The position numbers and the translations under genes were made by a program. Below, piece by piece: positions 20,441 through 45,052 of a stretch of DNA of 64,000 nucleotides (positions are counted from its first letter, which is position 1; each line of letters starts with the position of its first letter). The stretch is from positions 62,001 through 126,000 of the forward strand of contig NIVC01000733.1 in assembly GCA_002269645.1 (NCBI GenBank), read 5' to 3'. The DNA comes from Macrostomum lignano. Taxonomy: Eukaryota. The notes under the pieces were generated by a model. It made no database searches. It worked only from the letters and a program-made list of their open reading frames with translations, and was not told the origin of the DNA.

Positions 20441-22539
20441 ATGTTTCGCAACCAGTACGACCATGACGTCATCATATTTAGTCCCCAGGGTCGAATCCAT
20501 CAGATTGAGTATGCTATGGAAGCCGTGAAACAGGGCTCAGCCACTGTTGGAGTGAAAAATGGCACCCATGCCGCTCTGGTGGCACTTAAGAGAGCGCCAT
20601 CTGAGTTGTCTTCTTTTCAGAAGAAGATTATACCAGTGAGTTTTTTGAATATCTATGAAGACTACGGAATTTAATTTAATAGCTGTTATGTGAGTCGTAT
20701 AGAGTTAGAAGCCATGTCCTAGAAACTGGAGCCCGAATTTTTTTACTTTAGAATACTGACCCTCAGAAGCCTGTCAAGCCCGACCCTCAGAAGCCTGGCC
20801 CTCAGAAGCCTGGCCCTCAGAAGCCTGGCCCTCAGAAGCCTGGCCCTCAGAAGCCTAACCCTCAGAAGCCAGATCCTCAGAAGCCTGACCCTCAGAAGCC
20901 TGGCCCTCAGAAGCCTGACCCTCAGAAGCCTGGCCCTCAGAAGCCTGGCCCTCAGAAGCCTGGCCCTCAGAAGCCTGGCCCTCAGAAGCCTAACCCTCAG
21001 AAGCCAGATCCTCAGAAGCCTGACCCTCAGAAGCCTGGCCCTCAGAAGCCTGACCCTCAGAAGCCTGACCCTCAGAAGCCTGACCCTCTAAAAGCCAGAC
21101 CCTTAGAAGCCTGACCCTCAGAAGCCTGGCCCTCAGAAGCCTGACCCTAAGAAACCCGACCTTTAATAGCCTGACTCTCAGAAGCCTGAACCTAAGAATC
21201 CTAACCCTTAAAAGCCTGAAACTAAAAATCCTGACCCCCAGAATCCTGACCTCCACAGCCTGACCCTAAGAATGCTGACCCCCAGAGCCTGACCACAAGA
21301 ATCCTGACCCCAATAAGCTTGATCTTCCGCAGTTGCAACTAAACAAACAAAACATCCCAGAAACTAGTCATTATTCTCCCGCCCTCCAAATTCAGATTGA
21401 CAGCCACATTGGCGTATCGATCGCCGGACTGACAGCCGACGGTCAAGTGCTAAGCCGATTCGCTCGAGACGAATGCTTCAATCATCGTTGGGCCTACGAC
21501 AGCGCCCTGACTGTTAGCCGTTTAGTTGATAATTTGGCCTCGAAATTGCAGGTACCAACTCAGGTGTACGGTAAGCGACCGTTCGGAGTTGGACTGCTGA
21601 TTGCTGGCTTTGATATTGGCATTGGGCCGCGCGTGTTCTACCAGTGCCCGTCTGCTAACTATTACGATTGCAAGTCTATCGCTATTGGGGCCAGATCGCA
21701 GTCTGCTAGAACTTATCTGGAGGGTAAACTGGACGAGATTGCTGCCACAAAAACGCCTGAGGAGCTGATCAAGTATGTGTACTGCGATTTGTTTGACACT
21801 CTGCAAATATTTTGCTGTTAGTTGTCTACCCTAGTTCTGTAGTAGGTTTTGTCAGGCTACCTTAGTTCTGTAGTAGGTTTTGTCTGGCTACCTTAGTTAT
21901 GTAGTAGGTTTTGTCTGGCCACCTTAGTTCTGTGGTAGGTTTTGTCAGGCTACCTTAGTTCTGTAGTAGGTTTTGTCAGGCTACCTTAGTTCTGTAGTAG
22001 GTTTTGTGTGGCTACCTTAGTTCTGTAGTAGATTTTGTCAGGCTACCTTAGTTCTGTAGTAGATTTTGTCAGGCTACCTTTGTTCTGTAGTAGATTTTGT
22101 CAGGCTACCTTAGTTCTGTAGTAGGTTTTGCCTGTTCTGTAGTAGTTTCTGTAGTGAGTAGAATGTTTCTATTTCTAGTATTTATAGTAGTACTTTTTGT
22201 ATTGTTTATAATACATCTTACAGGGCGATAAGTGTCCGTAATTAAAACCATACTCCGTCTGCCCTCAGACACGGTCTAATTGCTCTGCGCAACACCCTGC
22301 CTAACGAGATGGAGCTCAGCGTCAAGAACTGCTCAGTAGCACTCGTTGGCTCCGATATAGATTTCACCGTCTACGAAGACTCAGCTGTTGAGCCATATTT
22401 GGCTTTGATTCGCGAGGAGCCTTCAGCGGGCGCCGCCGACGATGGTCAACCGTCGACACAGTCGACTTCCGGCGATGGTGCCGCCGGCCCTGGCAGCAGT
22501 GGAGCCGCCGAAGGCGAGGTTCGGATGGAGGAGGCGTAA
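20441..22539 (+). CDS. PSMA1: Proteasome subunit alpha type-1 (alpha6), 3 exons, ~280 aa
   Basis: join(20441-20635, 21396-21772, 22269-22539). N-terminal [33 protein letters not shown] signature; [15 protein letters not shown]; [13 protein letters not shown]; [14 protein letters not shown]; [15 protein letters not shown]. All introns GT-AG with consistent phase. Confidence 0.96.
20755..21310. repeat. 15-bp minisatellite (cctggccctcagaag)n in PSMA1 intron 1
   Basis: Tandem array decaying at its 3' end. Confidence 0.95.
21825..22135. repeat. 31-bp minisatellite in PSMA1 intron 2
   Basis: (gctaccttagttctgtagtaggttttgtcag)n. Confidence 0.95.
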
Positions 22540-22704
22540 TTAATGAAACTTGAAAGACTCTTCTATGATGTAGCAAATAATTAAATACCTATCTGTTTAT
22601 GTTCTTGCTGTCTATCTACTCTGGGATGCAATTTAAAATATTATACGCTACATGTCGGTAGTTTAACTAAAAAGTTTTCAACTTTAATTTTCAGTTATTT
22701 AATT

Positions 22705-23150
22705 ATACGCTACATATCGGTAGCCTAGACATTGTCCACTTCCAGGGGAGGTTCCTATATCGTCCTGGGTTTAATTCCAACTTTTGTTTAATACGCTACA
22801 TATCGGTAGCTAGACATTGTCCACTTCCAGGGTAGGTTCCTATATCGTACTGGTTTTAATTCCAACTTTTGTTTAATAGGCTACATATCGGTAGCTAGAC
22901 ATTGTCCACTTCCAGGGTAGGTTCCTATATCGTCCTGGTTTTAATTCCAACTTTTGTTTTATACGCTACATATCGGTAGCTAGACATTGTCCACTTCCAG
23001 GGTAGGTTCCTATATCGTCCTGGTTTTAATTCCAACTTTTGTTTAATACCGTACATATCGGTAGCTAGACATTGTCCACTTCCAGGGGAGTTTCCTATAT
23101 ATTCCTGGTTTTAATTTCAACTTTTGTTTAATACGCTACATATCGGCAGG
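22705..23150. repeat. 85-bp tandem repeat, ~5 copies, between PSMA1 and GART
   Basis: Unit starts at 22791 and 22876 (atacgctacatatcggtagctagacattgtccacttccagggtaggttcc...). Confidence 0.93.
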
Positions 23151-23959
23151 TAGGCATTCTCAACTGCTAAGGCAATTCATATTTAATCCCCAGGCTCAAG
23201 CCTAAAAAAGGTAATTTGATACGCTACGTATCGGTAGTATAATATTGTCCACTCCACAAACCCAGTGAATGTATCTATGTATCGAATACTAATAATTAAA
23301 GTGTAAAACGTGTTCGTTACATAAATTACGAACTTGTTTAGCTTGCTTTGTAAGCCTAGAATGAATAGAATGTCTCACGTAATTATTGCTTAAATTGGCG
23401 CCTGATTTATTTTGTCTCTTAATAAAAGAGAACTATACTACTAGCCGGTTGAATATACTACTTATTCATATACTACTCAAATAAGCTCGAGAAGCATTTC
23501 TATTATTATTATTCTTATTTCTAAATAAAGAAACGTAATTAGCATACCTTCTGCAGGCTAAAATGAAAGGTCTTTAGTTTCTTTGTCTCCGTCACTTGTT
23601 AATTTTTACTTACTAAATATCACTAAATTTATAAGGTAATGTATTTTGATATGCTCTATCCTGAACTGCAACCACCAAGTTGGCCGTTTCTGCTGTTTAG
23701 AAGCGTTTTCTTTTCAAAAAATAAATATATGCGAAGTCTACGAAAAGTTAAGAATACAAGCTTAGAGAGAAGTTGTTTGACTTGATACTTTAATCATATC
23801 ATTAGAAATTTGTAGACGCTAGAAATTAGGCAGCTAAACTGAAGTTTCTGAGATATGAAGTATGAAGCACCCTAAAAGATTTAAAGTTAATCCCTCGGGT
23901 TCTTGTTGAGCAATTAGTCAAATTATGAATGCATGTGCATAACCTTCGCCTCATGCTAT

Positions 23960-23972
23960 TTCATTATTCTAG
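23960..23972 (+). promoter_or_regulatory. Unpaired 3' splice acceptor in front of GART (candidate SL trans-splice site)
   Basis: ttcattattctag|GCT ACG GTC; the TAG of the acceptor is itself an in-frame stop. Confidence 0.65.
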
Positions 23973-26900
23973 GCTACGGTCCTAGTAATTGGCTCCGGCG
24001 GTCGTGAGCACGCCGTAGCGTGGAAGCTAGCTCAATCTGTTCAAGTTTCCACTGTTTACGTTGTCCCTGGCAACGCTGGCACGCGTGGATTTGTTAATGA
24101 CATTAGCAACGATAGTAACAGTAGCGTTATTAATCCTCAAGCGAAATTTCGACCACCTCCGCCAGGCGTTGATATCAAAGACTTCGCCAATTTGTCTAAT
24201 TGGTGCCGCAGCAGTTCAGTCGATCTTGTGTTTGTCGGTCCAGAAGATCCTTTGTCTAAGGGTATTGCCGATGTTCTAACTGAGGCTGGCATAGCCGTGT
24301 TTGGACCCAGTCGTTTGGCCTCAGAAATTGAATGGAGCAAAGCATTTGCCAAACAGTTTATGAAGAGGAACAGCATTCCTACGCCTGATTTTGTAGTTTG
24401 CGAGGTTTGTAGTTTGCTAATGGGTTGTTTGAAAATAGTAACCGGAAATTAGAAAATTATTGACAACTGAAAGTCAAAGGCTCTCTGAACAACCGGAAGT
24501 TAAAGAGCCTACTCCTTATCAATCGAAAGTTAGAGCCTAATAATTAACAACCGGAAGTTAAAGAGCCTACTCCTTAACAACCGAAAGTTAAGAGCCTACT
24601 CCTTAACAACCGGAAGTCAGAGCCTAATCCTTAACAACCGGAAGTTAAGAGCCTACTCCTTAACAACTGGAAGTTAAAGAGCCTACTCCTTAACAACCGG
24701 AAGTTAGAGCCTAATCCTTAACAACCGGAAGTTAAAGAGCCTACTCCTTAACAACCGGAAGTTAAGAGCCTACTCCTTAACAACCGAAAGTTAAGAGCCT
24801 ACTCCTTAACAACCGAAAGTTAAGAGCCTACTCCTTAACAACCGGAAGTCAGAGCCTAATCCTTAACAACCGGAAGTTAAGAGCCTACTCCTTAACAACC
24901 GGAAGTTAAGAGCCTACTCCTTAACAACCGAAAGTTAAGAGCCTACTCCTTAACAACTGGAAGTTAAGAGCCTACTCCTTAACAACCGGAAGTTAGAGCC
25001 TAATCATTAACAACCGGAAGTTAAAGAGCCTACTCCTTAACAACCGGAAGTTAAAGAGCCTACTCCTTAACAACCGGAAGTTAAAGAGCCTACTCCTTAA
25101 CAACCAGATGTTAAAGAGCCTACTCCTTAACAACCAAAAGTTAGAGCCTACTCCTTAACAACCGGAAGTTAAAGAGCCTACTCCTTAACAACTGGAAGTT
25201 AAAGAGCCTACTCCTTAACAACCAAAAGTTAGAGCCTACTCCTTAACAACCGGAAGTTAAAGAGCCTAATCCTTAACAACTGGAAGTTAGAGCCTAATCC
25301 TTAACAACCGGAAGTTAAAGAGCCTACTCCTTAACAACCGGAAGTTAAAGAGCCTACTCTTAACAACCGGAAGTTAAAGAGCCTACTCCTTAACAACCAA
25401 AAGTTAGAGCCTACACCTTAACAACCGGAAGTTAAAGAGCCTACTCCTTAACAACCGGAAGTAAAAGAGCCTACTCCTTAACAACCAAAAGTTAGAGCCT
25501 ACTCCTTAACAACCAGAAGTTAAAGAGCCTACTCCTTAACAACCGGAAGTTAGAGCCTAATCATTAACAACCTAATCAGCCTAATCATAAAAAGCCTAAT
25601 CATTTACAACCTTAACTTGACTTCAACTGAAGTTGAAGAGCCTATCATTAACAACTAAAAGTCAAAGGCTCTCTTAATAACCAAAAGTTTAAGGCTCTTT
25701 TAACAACCGGAAGTTAAAGAGTCTAATCCTTACCATCTGGAAGTCAAAGGCTCTCTTAAGAGCCGGAAGTTAAAGAGCCTACGAGTATTTTAGTCAACGT
25801 AGATTGCATTCTGCAATTATCTCATCGTTACAACCAGAAGTTGTAGTGTATCTTCAAAACCGAAAGTGTATAGTCTATACATTTGATTAAAAAGTTAGTC
25901 AAATAAACCATTTCAAAAATGGCAACTACTTTCAAAAAAACTCTATACTAAGTAGTGCTAAGTAGTATAAAGCGAAAATGAATTAAATCAAACATTCCCC
26001 CGCACGCAGGACCTAGCGGCCATCGAAGCAATTGCCGCTTCGCTATCTTCGCTCCCGTTCAAGCCTCTTGTAGCCAAAGCGAGCGGCCTAGCAGCCGGTA
26101 AAGGTGTTGTGGTATCGGACACTCCAGCCGAAGCAATCGCAGCTGCTAAAGATCTGCTCAAACGTTGCGGCGGTCCTATACTACTCGAAGCTCGAGTCGA
26201 CGGTCCTGAATTGTCGCTAATTGGTTTTAGCGACGGCGAACGGGTGTCGGTTTTGCCGCCAGCTAGGGATAGGAAGAGACGCCTTGATGGAGACTGCGGG
26301 CCCAACACTGGCGGGATGGGAGCCGCTGCTCCGTGTAGGCTGGATTCTGACAGGCCATTCTCACCTATTGCTAGCGACCAGCCAACTAATAAAGAGTTGT
26401 TGAGTCGGCTTGAGCGCGATTTTCTACAACGCGCAATTGACGGTCTGCGCGCCGAGGGTCGAAGATTTGTTGGCGCATTGTACGCCGGCTTGATTAGGGC
26501 TGGCGTTGATGCCAATGGCCAGGATGATTTTCAAGCCTTGGAGTTCAATTGTCGGCTGGGTGATCCGGAGACTCAGGCTCTCATGCCGCTGGTTGATTGC
26601 GATTTGTACCAGGTAGAGGACTGATGAAAGGTCACGAAAATCGCCCTCAGCAACAAAAATCTTCCCCCCAAGAAAAAATCCCCACCAACAAATTCGCCCC
26701 AAGAAAAAATCGCCCCTCTCCCCAACAAAAATCGCCATCCAAGAAAAAATCGCCCCTCCCTCCAACAAGAATCGCCCCTCCCTCCAACAAGAATCGCCCC
26801 TCTCCAACAAAAATAGCCCCTCCCTCCAACAAGAATCGCCCCTCCCTCCAACAAAAATCGCCCCTCTCTCCAACAAAAAACGCCCCTCCCTCCAACAAAA

Positions 26901-28739
26901 ATCGTCCCTCCCTCTAACAAAAATCGCCCCTCCCTCCAACAAAAATCGCCCCTCTCTCCAACAAAAAACGCCCCTCCCTCCAACAAGAATCGCCCCTCTC
27001 TCCAACAAAAAACGCCCCTCCCTCCAACAAAAATCGTCCCTCCCTCTAACAAAAATCGCCCCTCCCTCCAACAAAAATCGTCCCTCCCTCTAACAAAAAT
27101 CGCCCCTCCCTCCAACAAAAATCGCCCTCCCTCCAACAAAAATCGCCCCTCCCTCCAACAAAAATCGCCCCTCCCTCCAACAAAAATCGCCCCTCCCTCC
27201 AACAAAAATCGCCCCTCCCTCCAACAAAAATCGCCCCTCCTCCAACAAAAATCCCCCCCAAAAAATCGCCCCTCCGCCACGAAAAATCGCCCCTCCCCCA
27301 ACAAAAATCGCCCTCAGCAACAAGAATCCCCCTCACGACTGCAATCGGCCCCTACCACAAAACCACCCCCATGACACGAGAATCTGGCCTTCGACCAGCT
27401 CAAGAATCGCACCTTGTTCTGACAAAAATTCGTTCTGACAAAAAATACGCCCCTCCCAGGAATCGCCCATAACCTAAAAAAATCGCCCCTCTAACAAAAT
27501 CGCCCCCCCAATAAAAAATCGCCCCCAACGAAAATCGTCCCCCGACAAAATCCCCACCCCCCAAGAAAAATCGCCCCTCCACCAACAAAATCCCTCCAAC
27601 GAAAATCGCCCCCAAGAACAATCGCTCCTCCCCCAAGAAAAATCGCTTTTCTCCCAAGAAAAATCGCTTCCCAAGAAAAATCGCATCCCAAGAAAAAATC
27701 GCCCCTCCACCAACAAAATCCCTCCAACGAAAATCGCCCCCCTAAGAAAAATCGCCCCCAAGAAAAATCGCTTTTCTCCCAAGAATAATCGCTTCCCAAG
27801 AAAAATCACATCCCAAGAAAAATCGCTTTTCTCCCAAGAATAATCGCTTCCCAAGAAAAATCACATCCCAAGAAAAATCGCATCCCAAGAAAAAATCGCC
27901 CCTCCCCCAAGAGAAATCGCCCCCGAAAAATCGCCCTTCCCCCAAAAATCGCCCTTCCCCCAAAAATCGCCCTTCCCCCAAAAATCGCCCTTCCCCCAAA
28001 AATCGCCCTTCCCCCAAAAATCGCCCTTCCCCCAAAAAATCCCCCCCCGAAAAAATCGTCTTTCCTTAGGAAAAAGCGCCCCTCCGCCAAGAATAATCGC
28101 CCTCCCCCAAACCCCCCCCCCCCCCAACAAAAATCGCCATCAGCAACAAGAACCCCCTTCACGACTACACATCGGCCCTTACCACAAAATCACCCCCATG
28201 ACACAATGATAATCGGCCCTTCAACCAGCTCAAGAATCGCACCTTCCTTACTAATTTATTTGGTTGATTCAAACGCCAAACAGTTATGCCTAGACTGCGT
28301 TCACGGTAGCCTAACGCCCGGCCCGTTGCCATGCCAACCGTCCCGCGTGTCCCTGGCCGCCGTCCTAGTCCAGAGCCCCTACCCGGCCTCCTGTCCCGGC
28401 CGCTATCCGGTCCAAGGCTTGGACAGTTTTGCCAATCAGCCTGGCGATCCGCTGCTGGCTTTCCACGCCGGCACCGCTTGCGACGCTGCCGCGGCTGCTT
28501 CTAGCGGCGCCCAGACTGTTACAGCGGGCGGTCGGGTCTGCAATCTGGTTGCCGTGGCAACTGGCCCCGCCGAATGCCGGGCCGCTCTGCGTGCGGCACT
28601 CGGCGCTCGACGGATTCGATTCTTGGGGGTCGATTGGCGCCGGGATATTGCTGGCTGTGTGGCTGGGGACCAGGTGAGTTAGCTGTCTGTGTGTCTGTCT
28701 TTGTCTGTCTGTCTATGTCTGTCTGTCTGTCTGCCTGTC

Positions 28740-28806
<67 letters not shown>

Positions 28807-28809
28807 GCC

Positions 28810-28848
<39 letters not shown>

Positions 28849-28851
28849 GTG

Positions 28852-28920
<69 letters not shown>

Positions 28921-28955
28921 GCCTGTCTTTGTCTGTGTTTCTTTCTGTCTGTCTG

Positions 28956-29028
<73 letters not shown>

Positions 29029-29087
29029 TTCCGTCTGTCTGTCTGTGTCTGTCTGTCTGTCTGTCTTAGTGTCTGTCTTTCTGTCTA

Positions 29088-29158
<71 letters not shown>

Positions 29159-32100
29159 TTCCGTCTGTCTGTCTGTGTCTGTCTGTCTGTCTGTCTGTCT
29201 GTCTTTCCGTCTGTCTTTCCGTCTGTCTGTCTGTGTCTGTCTTTGTCTGTCTTTCTGTCTATCTGTCTGTCTGTCTACCCCACAGACAGGCCCAGTCGCC
29301 CAATCCCAGTCCGGCTCCTCAGCCTACGCATCCAGTGGCGTCAACGTGGCAGAAGGCGACCATCTAGTCGACCTGATCAAGCCTCTGTGCTCTCTTACCT
29401 GTCTCACCGCTTCCTCAGCTTGTCTCGAAGGCATCGGCAGTTTCGGCGCTCCCTACTCGCTAAATAATTGCGGCGGCGATTTTCTCGGACACTGTCCGGA
29501 TCCAGTGCTAGTGTCCGGAGTTGACGGAGTGGGAACTAAACTACTAGTGGCCGAGGCTGTGAACCAGTGGGGCGGAGTTGGAGTCGATTTAGTTGCTATG
29601 TGCGTCAACGATGTGCTTTGCCGGGGTGCCAGGCCGCTATTCTTTTTAGACACTTATTCGTGCGGCAGGCTGGATGCCCGAGTGGCTGCCGCTGTTGTTG
29701 CTGGTAACTATTTGTACTTTTATTTGGCTAATTTTGGATCCTAATAGGCGCTTATCTAATAGGGATTCTATTTTGGGATCCTAATAGGCGCTTATCTAAT
29801 AGGGATTCTATTTTGGGATCCTAATAGGCGCTTATCTAATAGGGATTCCAATTTGGGATCCTAATAGGCGCTTATCTAATAGGGATTCCAATTTGGGATC
29901 CTAATAGGCGCTTATCTAATAGGGATTCCAATCTGGGATCCTAATAGGGGCTTATCTAATAGGGATTCCAATTTGGGATCCTAATAGGGGCTTATCTAAT
30001 AGGGATTCTAATTTGGGATCCTAATAGGCGTTCATCTAATAGAGATTCTAATTTTGTTTTTTAATAGGAGTTCATCTAATACGGAATGCAATTTGGGATT
30101 CTAATATGGGTTTATCTAATAAAGATTCTAATTTTGAATCTCAGGCGTCTCGGACGGCTGCCTTCAGGCCGGCTGCGCTCTTGTTGGCGGCGAAACAGCC
30201 GAAATGCCCGGCATGTACGCCAGGGACTCCAGCGTTGATCTGATTGGCTGCTGCGTTGGCATTGTTGACAGGTGAGCTGAGCTATCGGTCAGTCAGTCAG
30301 TCAATCAGTCAGTCAGTCAGTCAGTCAGTCAGTCAGTCAGTCAATCAGTCAGTCAGTCAGTCAGTCAGTCAGTCAGTCAGTCAGTCAATCAGTCAGTCAG
30401 TCAGTCAGTCAGTCAGTCAGTCAGTCAGTCAGTCAGTCAGTCAGTCAGTCAGTCAGTCAGTCAGTCAGTCAGTCAGTCAGTCAATCAGTCAGTCAGTCAG
30501 TCAGTCAGTCAGTCAGTCAGTCAGTCAGTCAGTCAGTCAGTCAGTGAGTCAGTGAGTCAGTGAGTCAGTGAGTCAGTCAGTCAGTCAGTCAGTCAGTCAG
30601 TCAGTCAGTCAGTCAGTCAGTCAGTCAGTCAGTCAGTCAGTCAGTCAGTCAGTCAGTCAGTCAGTCAGTCAGTCAGTCAGTCAGTCAGTCAGTCAGTCAG
30701 TCAGTCAGTCAGTCAGTCAGTCAGTCAGTCAGTCAGTCAGTCAGTCAGTCAGTCAGTCAGTCAGTCAGTCAGTCAGTCAGTCAGTCAGTCAGTCAGTCAG
30801 TCAGTCAGTCAGTCAGTCAGTCAGTCAGTCAGTCAGTCAGTCAGTCAGTCAGTCAGTCAGTCAGTCAGTCAATCAATCAGTCAGTCAGTCAGTCAGTGAG
30901 TCAGTCAGTCAGTCAGTCAGTCAGTCAGTCAGTCAGTCAATCAGTCAGTCAGTCAGTCAGTCAGTCAGTCAGTCAGTCAGTCAGTCAGTCAGTCAGTCAG
31001 TCAGTCAGTCAGTCAGTCAGTCAGTCAGTCAGTCAGTCAGTCAGTCAGTCAGTCAGTCAGTCAGTCAGTCAGTCAGTCAGTCAGTCAGTCAGTCAGTCAG
31101 TCAGTCTAAAGTCATCTGTCACCTAAAGTCATCTGTCACCTAAAGTCATCTGTCACCTAAAGTCATCTGTCACCTAAAGTCATCTGTCACCTAAAGTCAT
31201 CTGTCACCTAAAGTCATCTGTCACCTAAAGTCATCTGTACCGTATTTCAGATCCCGCATGCTACCACGCCTAGACCAGATGGCAGCTGGCGATCCAATCG
31301 TGGCCTTGCTCTCATCCGGTCTGCATTCTAACGGCTACAGTCTTGCTAGAAAAATGATTCGTCAATTGCCAGACGGTTATAATAGTAGAGTTGCATATTC
31401 TACTATGACTACTGTTGCTAGTAGTGCTGCTGGCGACGGGCCTCCTGCTGGTTGTCCGCTTGGCGAAGAACTATTGACGCCAACTAGGATCTACGTGAAT
31501 CAGGTGAGATTCTTGCGATGGAAATCAGACCTTTAAAAATCGGTTAAAAATATAAAAACAAGTCTCGTCTTGACAACCGTATATTGAGAGAGTCCCATCT
31601 TGAGAGTCACATCTTGAGAGTCCCATCTTGAGAGTCCCATCTTGAGAGTCACATCTTGAGAGTCCCATCTTGAGAGTCCCATCTTGAGAGTCACATCTTG
31701 AGAGTCCCATCTTGAGAGTCACATCTTGAGAGTCACATCTTGAGAGTCCCATCTTGAGAGTCACATCTTGAGAGTCCCATCTTGAGAGTCACATCTTGAG
31801 AGTCACATCTTGAGAGTCACATCTTGAGAGTCACATCTTGAGAGTCCCATCTTGAGAGTCCCATCTTGAGAGTCACATCTTGAGAGTCACATCTTGAGAG
31901 TCACATCTTGAGAGTCCCATCTTAAGAGTCACATCTTGAGAGTCACATCTTGAGAGTCCCATCTTGAGAGTCACATCTTGAGAGTCACATCTTGAGAGTC
32001 ACATCTTGAGAGTCCCATCTTGAGAGTCCCATCTTGAGAGTCACATCTTGAGAGTCACATCTTGAGAGTCACATCTTGAGAGTCACATCTTGAGAGTCAC

Positions 32101-34935
32101 ATCTTGAGAGTCCCATCTTGAGGGTCATATCTTTAGAGTCGTATCTTGAGTCTTAACTTGAGGATCCCATCATGAGGGTCCCATCTTGAGACTCCCATCT
32201 TTAAAGTCCCATCTCGAGAGACCCATCTTGAGAGTCCCATCGTGAGAGTCCCATCTCGAGAGACCCATCTTGAGAGTCCCATCGTGAGAGTCCCATCTCG
32301 AGAGACCCATCGTGAGAGTCCCATCGTGGTGGTTCCCCAAAAACGGCTCTTATAAATAATCTCAAACTAACCGCCGCTATTCTTTTACTTATCTCTATTT
32401 TTTTGATAGCTCGGCCCGCTAATCCGGTCAGGCCTAATCACCGGATTAGCTCACATAACCGGTGGCGGCATAATCGGCAATTTGCCGCGCTGCCTGCCGA
32501 CTCATCTCGGCGCCAACATTAACTTGACCGCTTGGCAAATTCCTAAACTAATTCGTTGGCTAATGCACAGCGCTGGCATGGGTATTGAGGAGGCCTGCTG
32601 TACATTCAACTGCGGCATTGGTATGCTTATCGTTACTAAGCAACAGTGGCTAGCTAATTTATTGAATCGACTGCCGGAAGCATTCGTTGTTGGCGAATTA
32701 GTTGCTAAGCCTGGCGTGAATCTGATTGGTCAAGATTCTGTTAGCCCTCTGGCTACTATGGAGTATGTGCTAGGAGGATTGCCTTCTGCAACTGCTACTC
32801 AACCTGTAGCTCTTGGTGTGCTTATCTCTGGTACTGGAACTAACCTGCAGGTAAGCTGTAGGTTTGCTTTGCCAGGGGTCGTTGGGAGAGAGATGCTAGG
32901 GTCAATTCGGATAGAAATTAGAGTCATTGGGAAGGAGATGTAGAGTCATTAGGAGAGAGATGTAGGGTCATTAGGAGAGAGATGTAGGGTCATTAGGAGA
33001 GAGATGTAGGGTCATCAGGAGAGAGATGTAGGGTCATTAGCAGAGAGATGTAGGGTCATTAGGAGAGAGATGTAGGGTCATTAGGAGAGAGATGTAGGGT
33101 CATTAGCAGAGAGATGTAGGGTCATTAGCAGAGAGATGTAGGGTCATCAGGAGAGAGATGGAGGGTCATTAGAACAGATGTAGGGACATTATGAGAGACA
33201 TATAGGGACATTATGAGAGATATAGGGAGGGTCATTAGGAGAGAGATGTAGGAGAGATGTAGGGACATTATGAGAGAGATGTAGGGACATTATGAGAGAG
33301 ATGTAGGGACATTATGAGAGACATGTAGGGTCAATAGGAAAGAGATGTAGGGTAATGACGTAATGTTAGGAAAGGGATGTGGTCATTACGAGAGAGATGC
33401 AGAGTCACCAAGCGGATATACCAAATCATAATCAGAGATGCATCATCACATGTCACAATATTCCTAAATGAAGGCTCTACTGGACTACAGCCGCCAGATG
33501 GGCACCAGCTGTCCCTATCGAGTAGCTCTGGTCATTTCAAACGTAGCCACCGCTCAGGGCTTGCAACGCGCGACCAAAGCTGGCGTCCCAACTAGCGTGC
33601 TGAGTCACAAAGACTACCCGGGTGGCCGGCCGGAGTTCGATGCGGCATTAGTTGAAGAGCTGCGCTCCAAAGGTGTCCAATTAGTTGCCATGGCTGGTTT
33701 TATGCGCATCGTGACCAGGGTACTGTTGGACGCCTTCCCCGGCCGAGTGTTGAACACGCATCCAAGCTTGCTACCAGCGTTTAAGGTGTGCGGCTCTTGG
33801 ATTTGGGGCGATTCTGTAGGATTTGGAGCGATTCTGAAAGATTTGGGGCGATTCTGTAGGATTTGGGGCGATTCTGTAGGATTTAGAGCGATTCTGAAAG
33901 ATTTGGGGCGATTCTGTAGAATTTAGGGCGATTCTGTAGGACTTGGGGCGATTTTGTAGAATTCGGGGCGATTCTGTAGGATTTTTGGGGATTCTGTAGG
34001 ATTTTTGGGGATTCTGTAGGATGTTTGAGGATTCTGTTGGATTTAGGGCGATTCTGTAGGATTTGGAGCGATTCTGTAAGATTTGGGGCGATTCTGTAGG
34101 ATTTGGGGCGATTCTGTAGGATTTGAAGCGATTCTGAAAGATTTGGGGCGATTCTGTAGGATTTGGAGTGATTCTGAAAGATTTTTGGGGATTCTGTCCC
34201 GTCGAACGTTTCACCCGGACTTTTTTCCGGAATTTTGTGATCCGGGCCCGATTTTTAATTGATTTCCGGGTGAAGGCCCGGATCAGCTTTTTTGGCCCGG
34301 AACAGCCCCTTGTTCCGGAAAAAAATCCGGAAATATGATCCGGAAAATTTTCGGGAAAAGGAAAGCTGTTCCGGTCTGATTTTCCGGAATTTTTCACCCG
34401 GAACACTATGGAATTCTGGGTGTAGACCCGAATTTCAGTAGTGTTCCGGGTGAAAATGTTCCGGGTGAGATTTCGGGAATTGAGTCGGAATTCTCCAGTG
34501 ATCCGGACCAACTGATCCGGAAAATTCACCCGGATCAGCTCCCTTGACCCGAATTTCAGCCAAGTTCCGGGCGAAGCTGATCCGGGAAAATTTTATTATT
34601 CCCACACTATTGCTACAATTCAACTTCTCTGAAATGCGCAGGGCGCCCACGCGCATCGCGACGTGCTAGCCAGCGGCGTCCGCGTCACCGGCTGCACCGC
34701 TCATTTCGTTGTGCCCGAAGTCGACGCCGGGCCCATCGTACTGCAAGCCCCGGCTCCTGTGCTGCCTGGCGACTCTGAGGAGACCCTGCAGGACCGAGTC
34801 AAGCTGCTCGAGCACCGGCTGTTCCCTGCCGCTGTGGCAGCAGTTGCCAGGGGAGACTGCCGGTTTGTTGCTGGGCCGCCAGCCGATAAATGCGTGTGGT
34901 CATGTGAGCCGCCTTCCATGGCCGAGTTCATGTAG
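23973..34935 (+). CDS. GART: Trifunctional purine biosynthesis protein GARS-AIRS-GART, 9 exons, ~1090 aa; initiator Met not encoded in the first exon
   Basis: join(23973-24404, 26010-26612, 28284-28673, 29286-29703, 30145-30271, 31251-31503, 32410-32850, 33474-33785, 34642-34935); phases consistent. Motifs: [61 protein letters not shown] (GARS); [53 protein letters not shown] (AIRS); [42 protein letters not shown] (GART). Confidence 0.95.
24485..25790. repeat. 28-30-bp minisatellite with ACCGGAAGT core in GART intron 1
   Basis: (ccttaacaaccggaagttaaagagcctact)n. Confidence 0.96.
26640..28250. repeat. C-rich ~22-bp minisatellite in GART intron 2, organised as two blocks each ending in a duplicated ~110-bp tail
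   Basis: (aaaaatcgcccctccctccaac)n; tails at ~27312-27420 and ~28138-28247. Confidence 0.93.
28683..29277. repeat. (CTGT)n microsatellite filling GART intron 3
   Basis: Starts ~10 nt after the donor and ends ~8 nt before the acceptor. Confidence 0.97.
29732..30140. repeat. 40-bp quasi-palindromic minisatellite in GART intron 4
   Basis: (ttttgggatcctaataggcgcttatctaatagggattcta)n. Confidence 0.95.
30288..31238. repeat. (TCAG)n microsatellite (30288-31106) followed by a 17-bp repeat (ctaaagtcatctgtcac)n in GART intron 5
   Basis: Visible arrays. Confidence 0.97.
31587..32326. repeat. 14-bp minisatellite (gagagtcccatctt / gagagtcacatctt)n in GART intron 6
   Basis: Tandem array. Confidence 0.96.
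32890..33355. repeat. 22-bp minisatellite (tagggtcattaggagagagatg)n in GART intron 7
   Basis: Tandem array. Confidence 0.94.
33797..34197. repeat. 20-bp minisatellite (gatttggggcgattctgtag)n in GART intron 8
   Basis: Tandem array starting just after the donor. Confidence 0.94.
34200..34590. repeat. CCGG-rich cluster of inverted repeats/hairpins in GART intron 8
   Basis: 18-bp perfect IR ttttcacccggaacacta/tagtgttccgggtgaaaa (34391-34456); ccggatcagct...agctgatccgg (~34530-34585); ccggaaca...tgttccgg (~34297-34318). Confidence 0.75.
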
Positions 34936-37646: not shown

Positions 37647-37783
37647 GCGCTTTTCTGCTTTTCTCTCGTATCTAGGAAATTTCTTAAGCATTGACAATGA
37701 GGCAAATAAAGTAGCCGTCAATTCAATCCACTATTTATTATTTTGCAGCTGGCAAACAATTCAAACTCGATCCAAGCCAAGCA

Positions 37784-38185
37784 ATGCCCGCCCCAGACAA
37801 AGAAGAACGGAAGCGTCAAAAAGCGGAATTAGAGGCTCGCTATCGAGCTAAACAAGAGTTAATAACTGGCGGTGCAAAGCCTAAACAGCCGCAGGCGTTC
37901 CTGCCTCCGCCTGACACTCTGTCACGTGATCTGGCTAGCGGCGTTGGCGATACAAGCCAAGAACGGCCTACTGGCATCAATCATGTTGTGCACAAAATGA
38001 AAGAGAATCCTTTAGTGCCGGGCGGTATGCTTCTAACCGTATTCGCTCTGGGCAACGGGTTGCGTTACATGATTAAAAGGAATAGCCAAGCTCAGCAGAC
38101 TATGATGCGATTGCGGGTGTTTGGTCAAGGCTTCACCATGGTGGCTTTGGTTGCTGGCACTGTGTTGCTGGCGTCTAAGAAGTGA
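37784..38185 (+). CDS. HIGD2A: HIG1-domain mitochondrial membrane protein (HIGD2A/Rcf1-like), single coding exon, 133 aa
   Basis: ORF contains KMKENPLVPGGMLLTVFALGNGL...NSQAQQTMMRLRVFGQGFTMVALVAG, the HIG1 family pattern (ENPLVP ... MMR.R..AQGFT) with two hydrophobic helices. The HIGD1 versus HIGD2 assignment is not certain. Confidence 0.85.
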   Translation: MPAPDKEERKRQKAELEARYRAKQELITGGAKPKQPQAFLPPPDTLSRDLASGVGDTSQERPTGINHVVHKMKENPLVPGGMLLTVFALGNGLRYMIKRNSQAQQTMMRLRVFGQGFTMVALVAGTVLLASKK

Positions 38186-40925: not shown

Positions 40926-40972
40926 CGCCTTGCTCATAACAGTATCATTATCTATTCCAGCAGTCAGCGCAG

Positions 40973-45052
<4,080 letters not shown>

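Follow-up and report, generated by a model that had tools for sequence, protein, structure and literature searches.

The AUG at the 3' end of flatworm spliced leaders (SLs) was reported by Cheng et al. (2006, J Biol Chem 281:733) to serve as the initiator methionine, and in Schistosoma mansoni the SL AUG lies in frame in 28% of trans-spliced transcripts and is needed by more than 40 cDNAs, as far as these results are related in papers that cite them (PMC9851317, PMC12582326). Macrostomum lignano has a single SL of 35 nt, CGGTCTCTTACTGCGAAGACTCAATTTATTGCATG, which ends in ...TTGCATG and is followed by GTAAG (PMC8629364), and the final ATG of the Macrostomum SL has been described as a translation start codon (PMC10468722). 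About 30% of M. lignano genes are trans-spliced; about 70% of these are conserved with human, versus 37% of the other genes, and the motif enriched at trans-splice acceptors is [T/C]TNCAG (PMC8629364). Here we analyzed a 64,000-nt stretch of the M. lignano genome (contig NIVC01000733.1, positions 62,001 to 126,000; hereafter the window, whose own numbering is used throughout), which carries a gene for the trifunctional GARS-AIRS-GART enzyme (GART). The first GART exon has no start codon of its own, and we infer from the sequence that the start AUG is very probably supplied by the SL, trans-spliced at position 23973.

The sequence across the acceptor reads ...ctcatgctatttcattattcTAG, directly followed by GCTACGGTCCTAGTAATTGGCTCCGGCGGTCGTGAGCAC, and direct reading together with three-frame translation places the first exon base at 23973, from where the codons run GCT ACG GTC CTA GTA ATT GGC TCC GGC GGT CGT GAG CAC. 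The TAG at 23970-23972 is a stop in the frame of exon 1, and its AG (23971-23972) is the 3' splice acceptor; a second stop in this frame, TAA, lies 10 codons upstream of the TAG. Only two genomic ATGs upstream of 23973 are in frame, at 23862 and 23925, and each is followed by an in-frame stop. The first in-frame ATG within exon 1 is codon 130 (FMKRN), which lies 3' of the GARS N-domain. Reading and translation thus confirmed what a first-pass annotation of the locus had claimed, namely that the first exon is start-less and that the in-frame TAG provides the acceptor.

The acceptor at 23971-23972 looks real and has the features expected of a 3' splice site in use. Pyrimidines make up 73% of positions -25 to -4, and an AG-free run of 54 nt precedes it, with no AG between 23917 and 23970; this pyrimidine-rich, AG-free stretch and the putative trans-splice acceptor AG would form the 3' end of the outron (23916-23972, forward strand). 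The acceptor hexamer TTCTAG resembles the published trans-splice motif but has T instead of C at -3. Moreover, the acceptor stands in phase 0 directly 5' of the conserved open reading frame (ORF), without an in-frame ATG between the nearest stop and the N-terminus. The same arrangement of the ORF start recurs in two other homeologous loci of the genome, and therefore the lack of a start is not an assembly accident.

Joining the SL to exon 1 in silico gives AUUGCAUGGCU, or in longer form ...AUUGCAUGGCUACG...; at 23973 the join creates GCAUGG and leaves the frame open into ATVLVIG. Its -3 purine together with the G at +4 makes a good Kozak context. The first-pass annotation had relied on flatworm leaders ending in AUG, and this holds for the species at hand, as CGGTCTCTTACTGCGAAGACTCAATTTATTGCATG ends in ATG. 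According to the mechanism that we propose, the GART pre-mRNA would be trans-spliced between 23972 and 23973, with ...TTGCATG placed before GCTACGGTCC, so that the mature mRNA would hold the junction of ...AATTTATTGCATG with GCTACGGTCCTAG. The last three bases of the leader (...UUGCAUG) would serve as the start codon for the frame GCU ACG GUC, and the message would encode a trifunctional GARS-AIRS-GART enzyme of 1090 residues. Because the genome encodes no initiator, translation of GART would depend on trans-splicing. The SL sequence was found neither in the window as a whole nor in the 1433-nt region upstream of the acceptor, so that a local SL RNA gene and a cis copy of the leader are absent, and an Rfam search of the window at the gathering threshold returned zero matches. 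The next acceptor downstream, between 23985 and 23986, was rejected, as the SL joined there reads AUG UAA. An SL-borne start in GART would be an ordinary new example of a mechanism that has long been known in flatworms, since 2006.

With one methionine added, the first G of the GSGGREH motif becomes residue 8 of M. lignano GART. In the full-length search set, this G is found at residue 8-12 in 100 of 117 animal trifunctional GARTs (mode 9) and at residue 15-21 in 11 of the 117, while its mode in PurD-length proteins is residue 7. Orthologue N-termini consist of M plus 1-4 residues before the conserved motif block, and in solved PurD/GARS structures the block with the invariant GSGGREH motif aligns from residue 2-4. 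The predicted Ala2 is matched by the Ala in ARVLIIGSGG, close to where the native human sequence in 2QK4 begins, and Thr3 by the Lys in KVLVIGNGG of E. coli PurD (1GSO). These alignments are compatible with a canonical N-terminus made by one added methionine but do not force it, and homology also tolerates a few extra residues. The earlier statement that exactly one Met is missing therefore fits the homologues, although its certainty was overstated. Its companion proposal, that SL trans-splicing at 23973 would restore a canonical N-terminus, gained support from the join, the start-less gene models described below and the precedent.

The gene itself is an intact, animal-type trifunctional GARS-AIRS-GART gene. 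Exons were found with a tblastn guide, a human GART sequence that served solely for locating exons, and the junctions were then placed by hand; the exon model was validated by its equality with PAA77597.1 apart from the first Ala. It contains nine exons and 1089 codons, all introns are GT-AG, and the domain order is GARS-AIRS-GART. For the identical product, all six Pfam domains are recorded (GARS_N, GARS_A, GARS_C, AIRS, AIRS_C and Formyl_trans_N). In a full-length protein search, Macrostomum lignano proteins ranked first and animal trifunctional GARTs came next, with identities of 33-46%; when the full length is covered, identity to animal GARTs is 40-46%. A query with exon 1 alone matched just short bacterial-type PurD fragments and missed the gene's own 1088-residue protein, apparently because the search seems limited to targets of about 0.6-1.75 times the query length. 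Comparison of the homeologues indicates that GART is functional and under purifying selection: the ratio of nonsynonymous to synonymous divergence (dN/dS) over the whole gene is 0.11-0.13 against the most diverged homeologue, zero indels separate the homeologues across the 3270-nt GART coding sequence (CDS), and none of the three copies carries a frameshift.

Published gene models lack the start as well. The NCBI proteins of the gene, all labelled "partial", are PAA78424.1 (Mlig017299.g1), PAA77597.1 (Mlig022168.g1) and PAA82156.1 (Mlig013457.g1), and neither a start codon nor an upstream exon is present in the RNA-seq-guided NCBI models of any of the three copies. The window copy is Mlig022168.g1, with an annotated CDS of 23976-34935 whose first codon is ACG; its locus in our comparison, L002 on NIVC01000733.1, is base-for-base identical to the window across the 20 kb tested. 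In the order given, the NCBI models open with TVLVIG, TVLVIG and VLVIG, that is 3, 3 and 6 nt past the acceptor, and two UniProt models (A0A1I8HV28 and A0A1I8HM72) start with ATVLVIG, exactly at the acceptor. For the Mlig_3_7 annotation, the SL was trimmed from the reads, the trimmed reads were mapped, transcriptional units were cut at the SL signal and ORFs were called by TransDecoder (PMC5730564). An SL-trimming pipeline would drop a leader-borne AUG, and 5'-partial models that start at the trans-splice site are what it would leave. In another UniProt model, A0A1I8HAV9, translation has been re-started at the internal Met130 and the whole GARS N-domain is lost.

The UniProt models A0A1I8HV28, A0A1I8HM72, A0A1I8F256 and A0A1I8HAV9 of this family are mis-spliced or truncated, with faults that include frame-shifted stretches, missing exons, a duplicated C-terminus and the false start at Met130, and they are named merely 'phosphoribosylformylglycinamidine cyclo-ligase' though the gene is trifunctional.

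Several observations weigh against an SL-borne start. The acceptor is TAG, whereas CAG is preferred. ACG or GTC is the first codon of the NCBI CDSs, which therefore open 3 or 6 nt past the acceptor and not at the first exon base. In the homeologue L003 (Mlig013457.g1, NIVC01000491.1), the acceptor reads cattctTG/GCT versus cattctAG/GCT in the window (L003:9983-9997, corresponding to window 23961-23975 in the homeologue alignment). Weak donors occur within GART itself, and on sequence alone upstream mini-exons with weak donors are therefore conceivable. A literature search on GART, Mlig017299, Mlig022168, Mlig013457 and PAA77597 found no mention of the gene, and transcript-derived (Logan) copies starting with MATVLV were not found in the protein collection with the exon-1 and first-413-residue queries. 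A scan of metagenome contigs gave 0 matches to the SL/exon junction, and this result is uninformative because the exon-alone control pattern also gave 0 and the collection is without this organism.

Apart from its acceptor, the L003 copy is intact: its eight cis introns are all GT-AG, its 1089-codon ORF is unbroken, and its dN/dS is about 0.11. The stretch that is opened by the loss of the TAG holds neither an ATG nor an AG. The substitutions of A0A1I8HM72 match the L003 copy, yet that model begins with ATVLVIG. Candidate explanations of the TG are a base error, a very recent loss of translatability or function in one of the three copies, and unconventional splicing.

We weighed three other origins of the start. 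A short cis-spliced 5' exon within the 1.4-kb intergenic region could supply an ATG and a few residues, and longer N-termini do occur in some orthologues (the 11 of 117 with the motif G at residue 15-21). An exhaustive enumeration between the stop of the upstream PSMA1-like gene (22539) and the acceptor gave 13 candidates, ATG-initiated open frames that reach a GT in phase 0, but the species donor GT[G/A]AG occurs in 0 of the 13. Donor strength is not decisive here, because GART's own introns accept weak donors, among them GTTTGT and GTAACT. The cis-spliced rival named in the first-pass annotation, the mini-exon ATG CGA AGT CTA CGA AAA/gttaag (MRSLRK, 23729-23746, forward strand), is present as described and has a weak donor, GTTAAG; it is not conserved, and we rejected it, as its ATG reads AAG in both other copies (L001 and L003). 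A longer ORF that runs into the same donor at 23746 is broken by a 4-nt indel in the homeologue comparison. MKHPKRFK/gttaat (23862-23885, forward strand) occurs in all three copies and is the sole such candidate within 250 nt of the acceptor; it needs an 87-nt intron, its donor is very poor (T at +3, no G at +5) and it is in no RNA-seq-guided model, so its use appears unlikely. The other candidates common to the three copies are the ATGs at 23639 and 23651, which share one very weak donor, AGC/GTTTTC, at 23704. Across the last ~410 nt upstream of the acceptor, the homeologues differ by six indels, none a multiple of 3, as in non-coding DNA, with a p-distance of 0.02-0.05. Given also that the RNA-seq-guided NCBI models contain no upstream exon and that two UniProt models start at the acceptor, we consider a cis-spliced start improbable.

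A second alternative is that a transcript which is unspliced, or capped in another way, is translated from the near-cognate ACG at 23976, which would yield M-VLVIGSGG. In the context of this codon, GCUACGG, position -3 is a purine and position +4 is G; its product would look like the MKVLVIG of bacterial PurD, and the NCBI CDS of the window copy opens at this very codon. However, near-cognate start codons are inefficient, the 20 ATGs on the unspliced leader (ten of them in the last 450 nt) would catch scanning ribosomes, and the species already has an AUG donor in its SL. Since the CDS of the third copy opens at GTC, the ACG at the head of the NCBI CDS is most simply explained by the way in which 5'-partial ORFs are called, and we regard an ACG start as very improbable. 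We give equally little credence to a start at codon 130, without the GARS N-domain, or to a locus that is not translated into the full-length enzyme. Met130 is the sole genomic in-frame ATG of exon 1 and is assumed by A0A1I8HAV9, but a start there would cost the protein its entire GARS_N domain and, with it, the invariant GSGGREH motif. Moreover, codons 1-129 stay open, with nonsynonymous and synonymous differences between homeologues of pN 0.010 versus pS 0.043 (small counts), and the whole-gene dN/dS speaks against this reading too. An AUG delivered by the SL at 23973 remains the reading that we favor.

All exons of GART lie on the forward strand. Exon 1 (23973-24404) encodes the GARS N-domain in 144 codons, is in phase 0 at both ends, lacks an initiator and ends at the donor GAG/gtttgt. 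Compared with human GARS and E. coli PurD, its GARS N-domain contains an insertion of about 18 residues (24084-24160), which sits after the PGNAGT motif and ahead of the conserved block that follows it. Exon 2 (26010-26612) encodes the GARS ATP-grasp domain and exon 3 (28284-28673) the GARS C-domain; the N-terminal part of AIRS is on exon 4 (29286-29703), and AIRS continues on exon 5 (30145-30271) and exon 6 (31251-31503). Exon 7 (32410-32850) carries the AIRS C-domain and the start of the formyltransferase domain, which continues on exon 8 (33474-33785), and exon 9 (34642-34935) ends with the stop TAG at 34933-34935. Intron 1 harbors a minisatellite (24488-25572) with a unit of ~29/58/88 bp and ~37 repeats.

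The upstream neighbor on the same strand is a PSMA1-like gene for a proteasome alpha subunit (20441-22539), which opens with an ATG of its own at 20441 and has its stop codon at 22537-22539. The intergenic region or putative outron, from this stop to the GART acceptor, spans 1433 nt (22540-23972, forward strand) and includes an 85-bp tandem repeat of 5.4 copies at 22705-23165. The window as a whole is dense in minisatellite arrays and (GACA)n-type microsatellites, which inflate introns and intergenic distances. In M. lignano, operons have been defined by two features: an upstream gene on the same strand at a repeat-subtracted distance of less than 1 kb, and a downstream gene that is SL trans-spliced (PMC8629364). 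When the 461-nt tandem repeat is subtracted, the distance from stop to acceptor is 972 nt, just below 1 kb. Membership of the PSMA1-like gene in an operon-like unit with GART, as its upstream member, is only a possibility. Since GART bears the label g1 of its transcriptional unit, the annotation does not place it downstream of the proteasome gene in one operon. A more far-reaching scenario is that GART expression is strictly gated by trans-splicing, possibly with GART as the downstream gene of a proteasome-alpha/GART polycistron, and that the homeologues differ in this gate, the L003 copy (AG to TG) being a very recent translational knock-out or using a non-AG or otherwise unconventional trans-splice site. 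We consider this scenario speculative and rather unlikely.

Acceptors near start codons are also found in two other genes of the window. In a HIG1-domain gene (region 37749-37835), a strong acceptor, ttattttgcag/CTGGC, lies between 37748 and 37749; if the SL were added at 37749, its AUG would be out of frame with the gene's own ATG at 37784 and would open an overlapping upstream ORF of 28 codons. The annotated CDS of this gene (141 residues) starts without an ATG at 37760. In a Rab-type GTPase gene (region 40950-40980), a cluster of four closely spaced AGs (ccag/cag/tcag/cgcag/ATG) stands just before its own ATG at 40973. With the SL added at either of the first two AGs, the frame would be kept and MQSAQ or MSAQ gained, and addition at the fourth would give MM...; the annotated CDS opens two codons ahead of the ATG.

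The main value of these observations lies in annotation. The real start codon is lost in pipelines that use the genome only or trim the SL, and genes of this kind are consequently recorded as 'partial' or falsely re-started, as A0A1I8HAV9 is at codon 130; adding an ATG at trans-splice sites would mend such models in Macrostomum and other flatworms. Additionally, a core enzyme of de novo purine synthesis is apparently untranslatable without trans-splicing, which makes GART a clean endogenous reporter of how the SL AUG is used in a flatworm model that can be made transgenic.

How does this locus compare with known systems? C. elegans-type SL1/SL2 trans-splicing likewise removes an outron at a donor-less 3' splice site and resolves the downstream genes of polycistrons, but nematode leaders are not AUG-ended, and recipient genes have their own start a few bases past the acceptor. 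The slORFs identified with slORFfinder (PMC9851317) share with GART a leader-borne start and an ORF that is invisible to genome-only annotation. However, many slORFs overlap annotated ORFs in other frames, whereas the GART frame is a canonical, conserved main ORF, and many use near-cognate NUG starts in nematodes, ascidians and euglenozoans, whereas GART would rely on a true AUG. The SL-AUG mRNAs of S. mansoni, as far as they are described in the citing papers, share this design: the SL ends in AUG, a phase-0 acceptor precedes the second codon, and there is no genomic start. M. lignano differs in being a free-living macrostomorph, not a trematode, and in its SL sequence, and the GART junction and translation start described here are predicted ones. 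Studies of trans-splicing and operons in M. lignano (Wudarski 2017, PMC5730564; Ustyantsev and Berezikov 2021, PMC8629364; Wiberg 2023, PMC10468722) concern the same species, the same SL and a similar acceptor motif, and they neither name GART nor give a number for genes that depend on the SL AUG. As a conserved housekeeping gene, GART belongs to the class that is enriched among the trans-spliced genes of M. lignano (PMC8629364).

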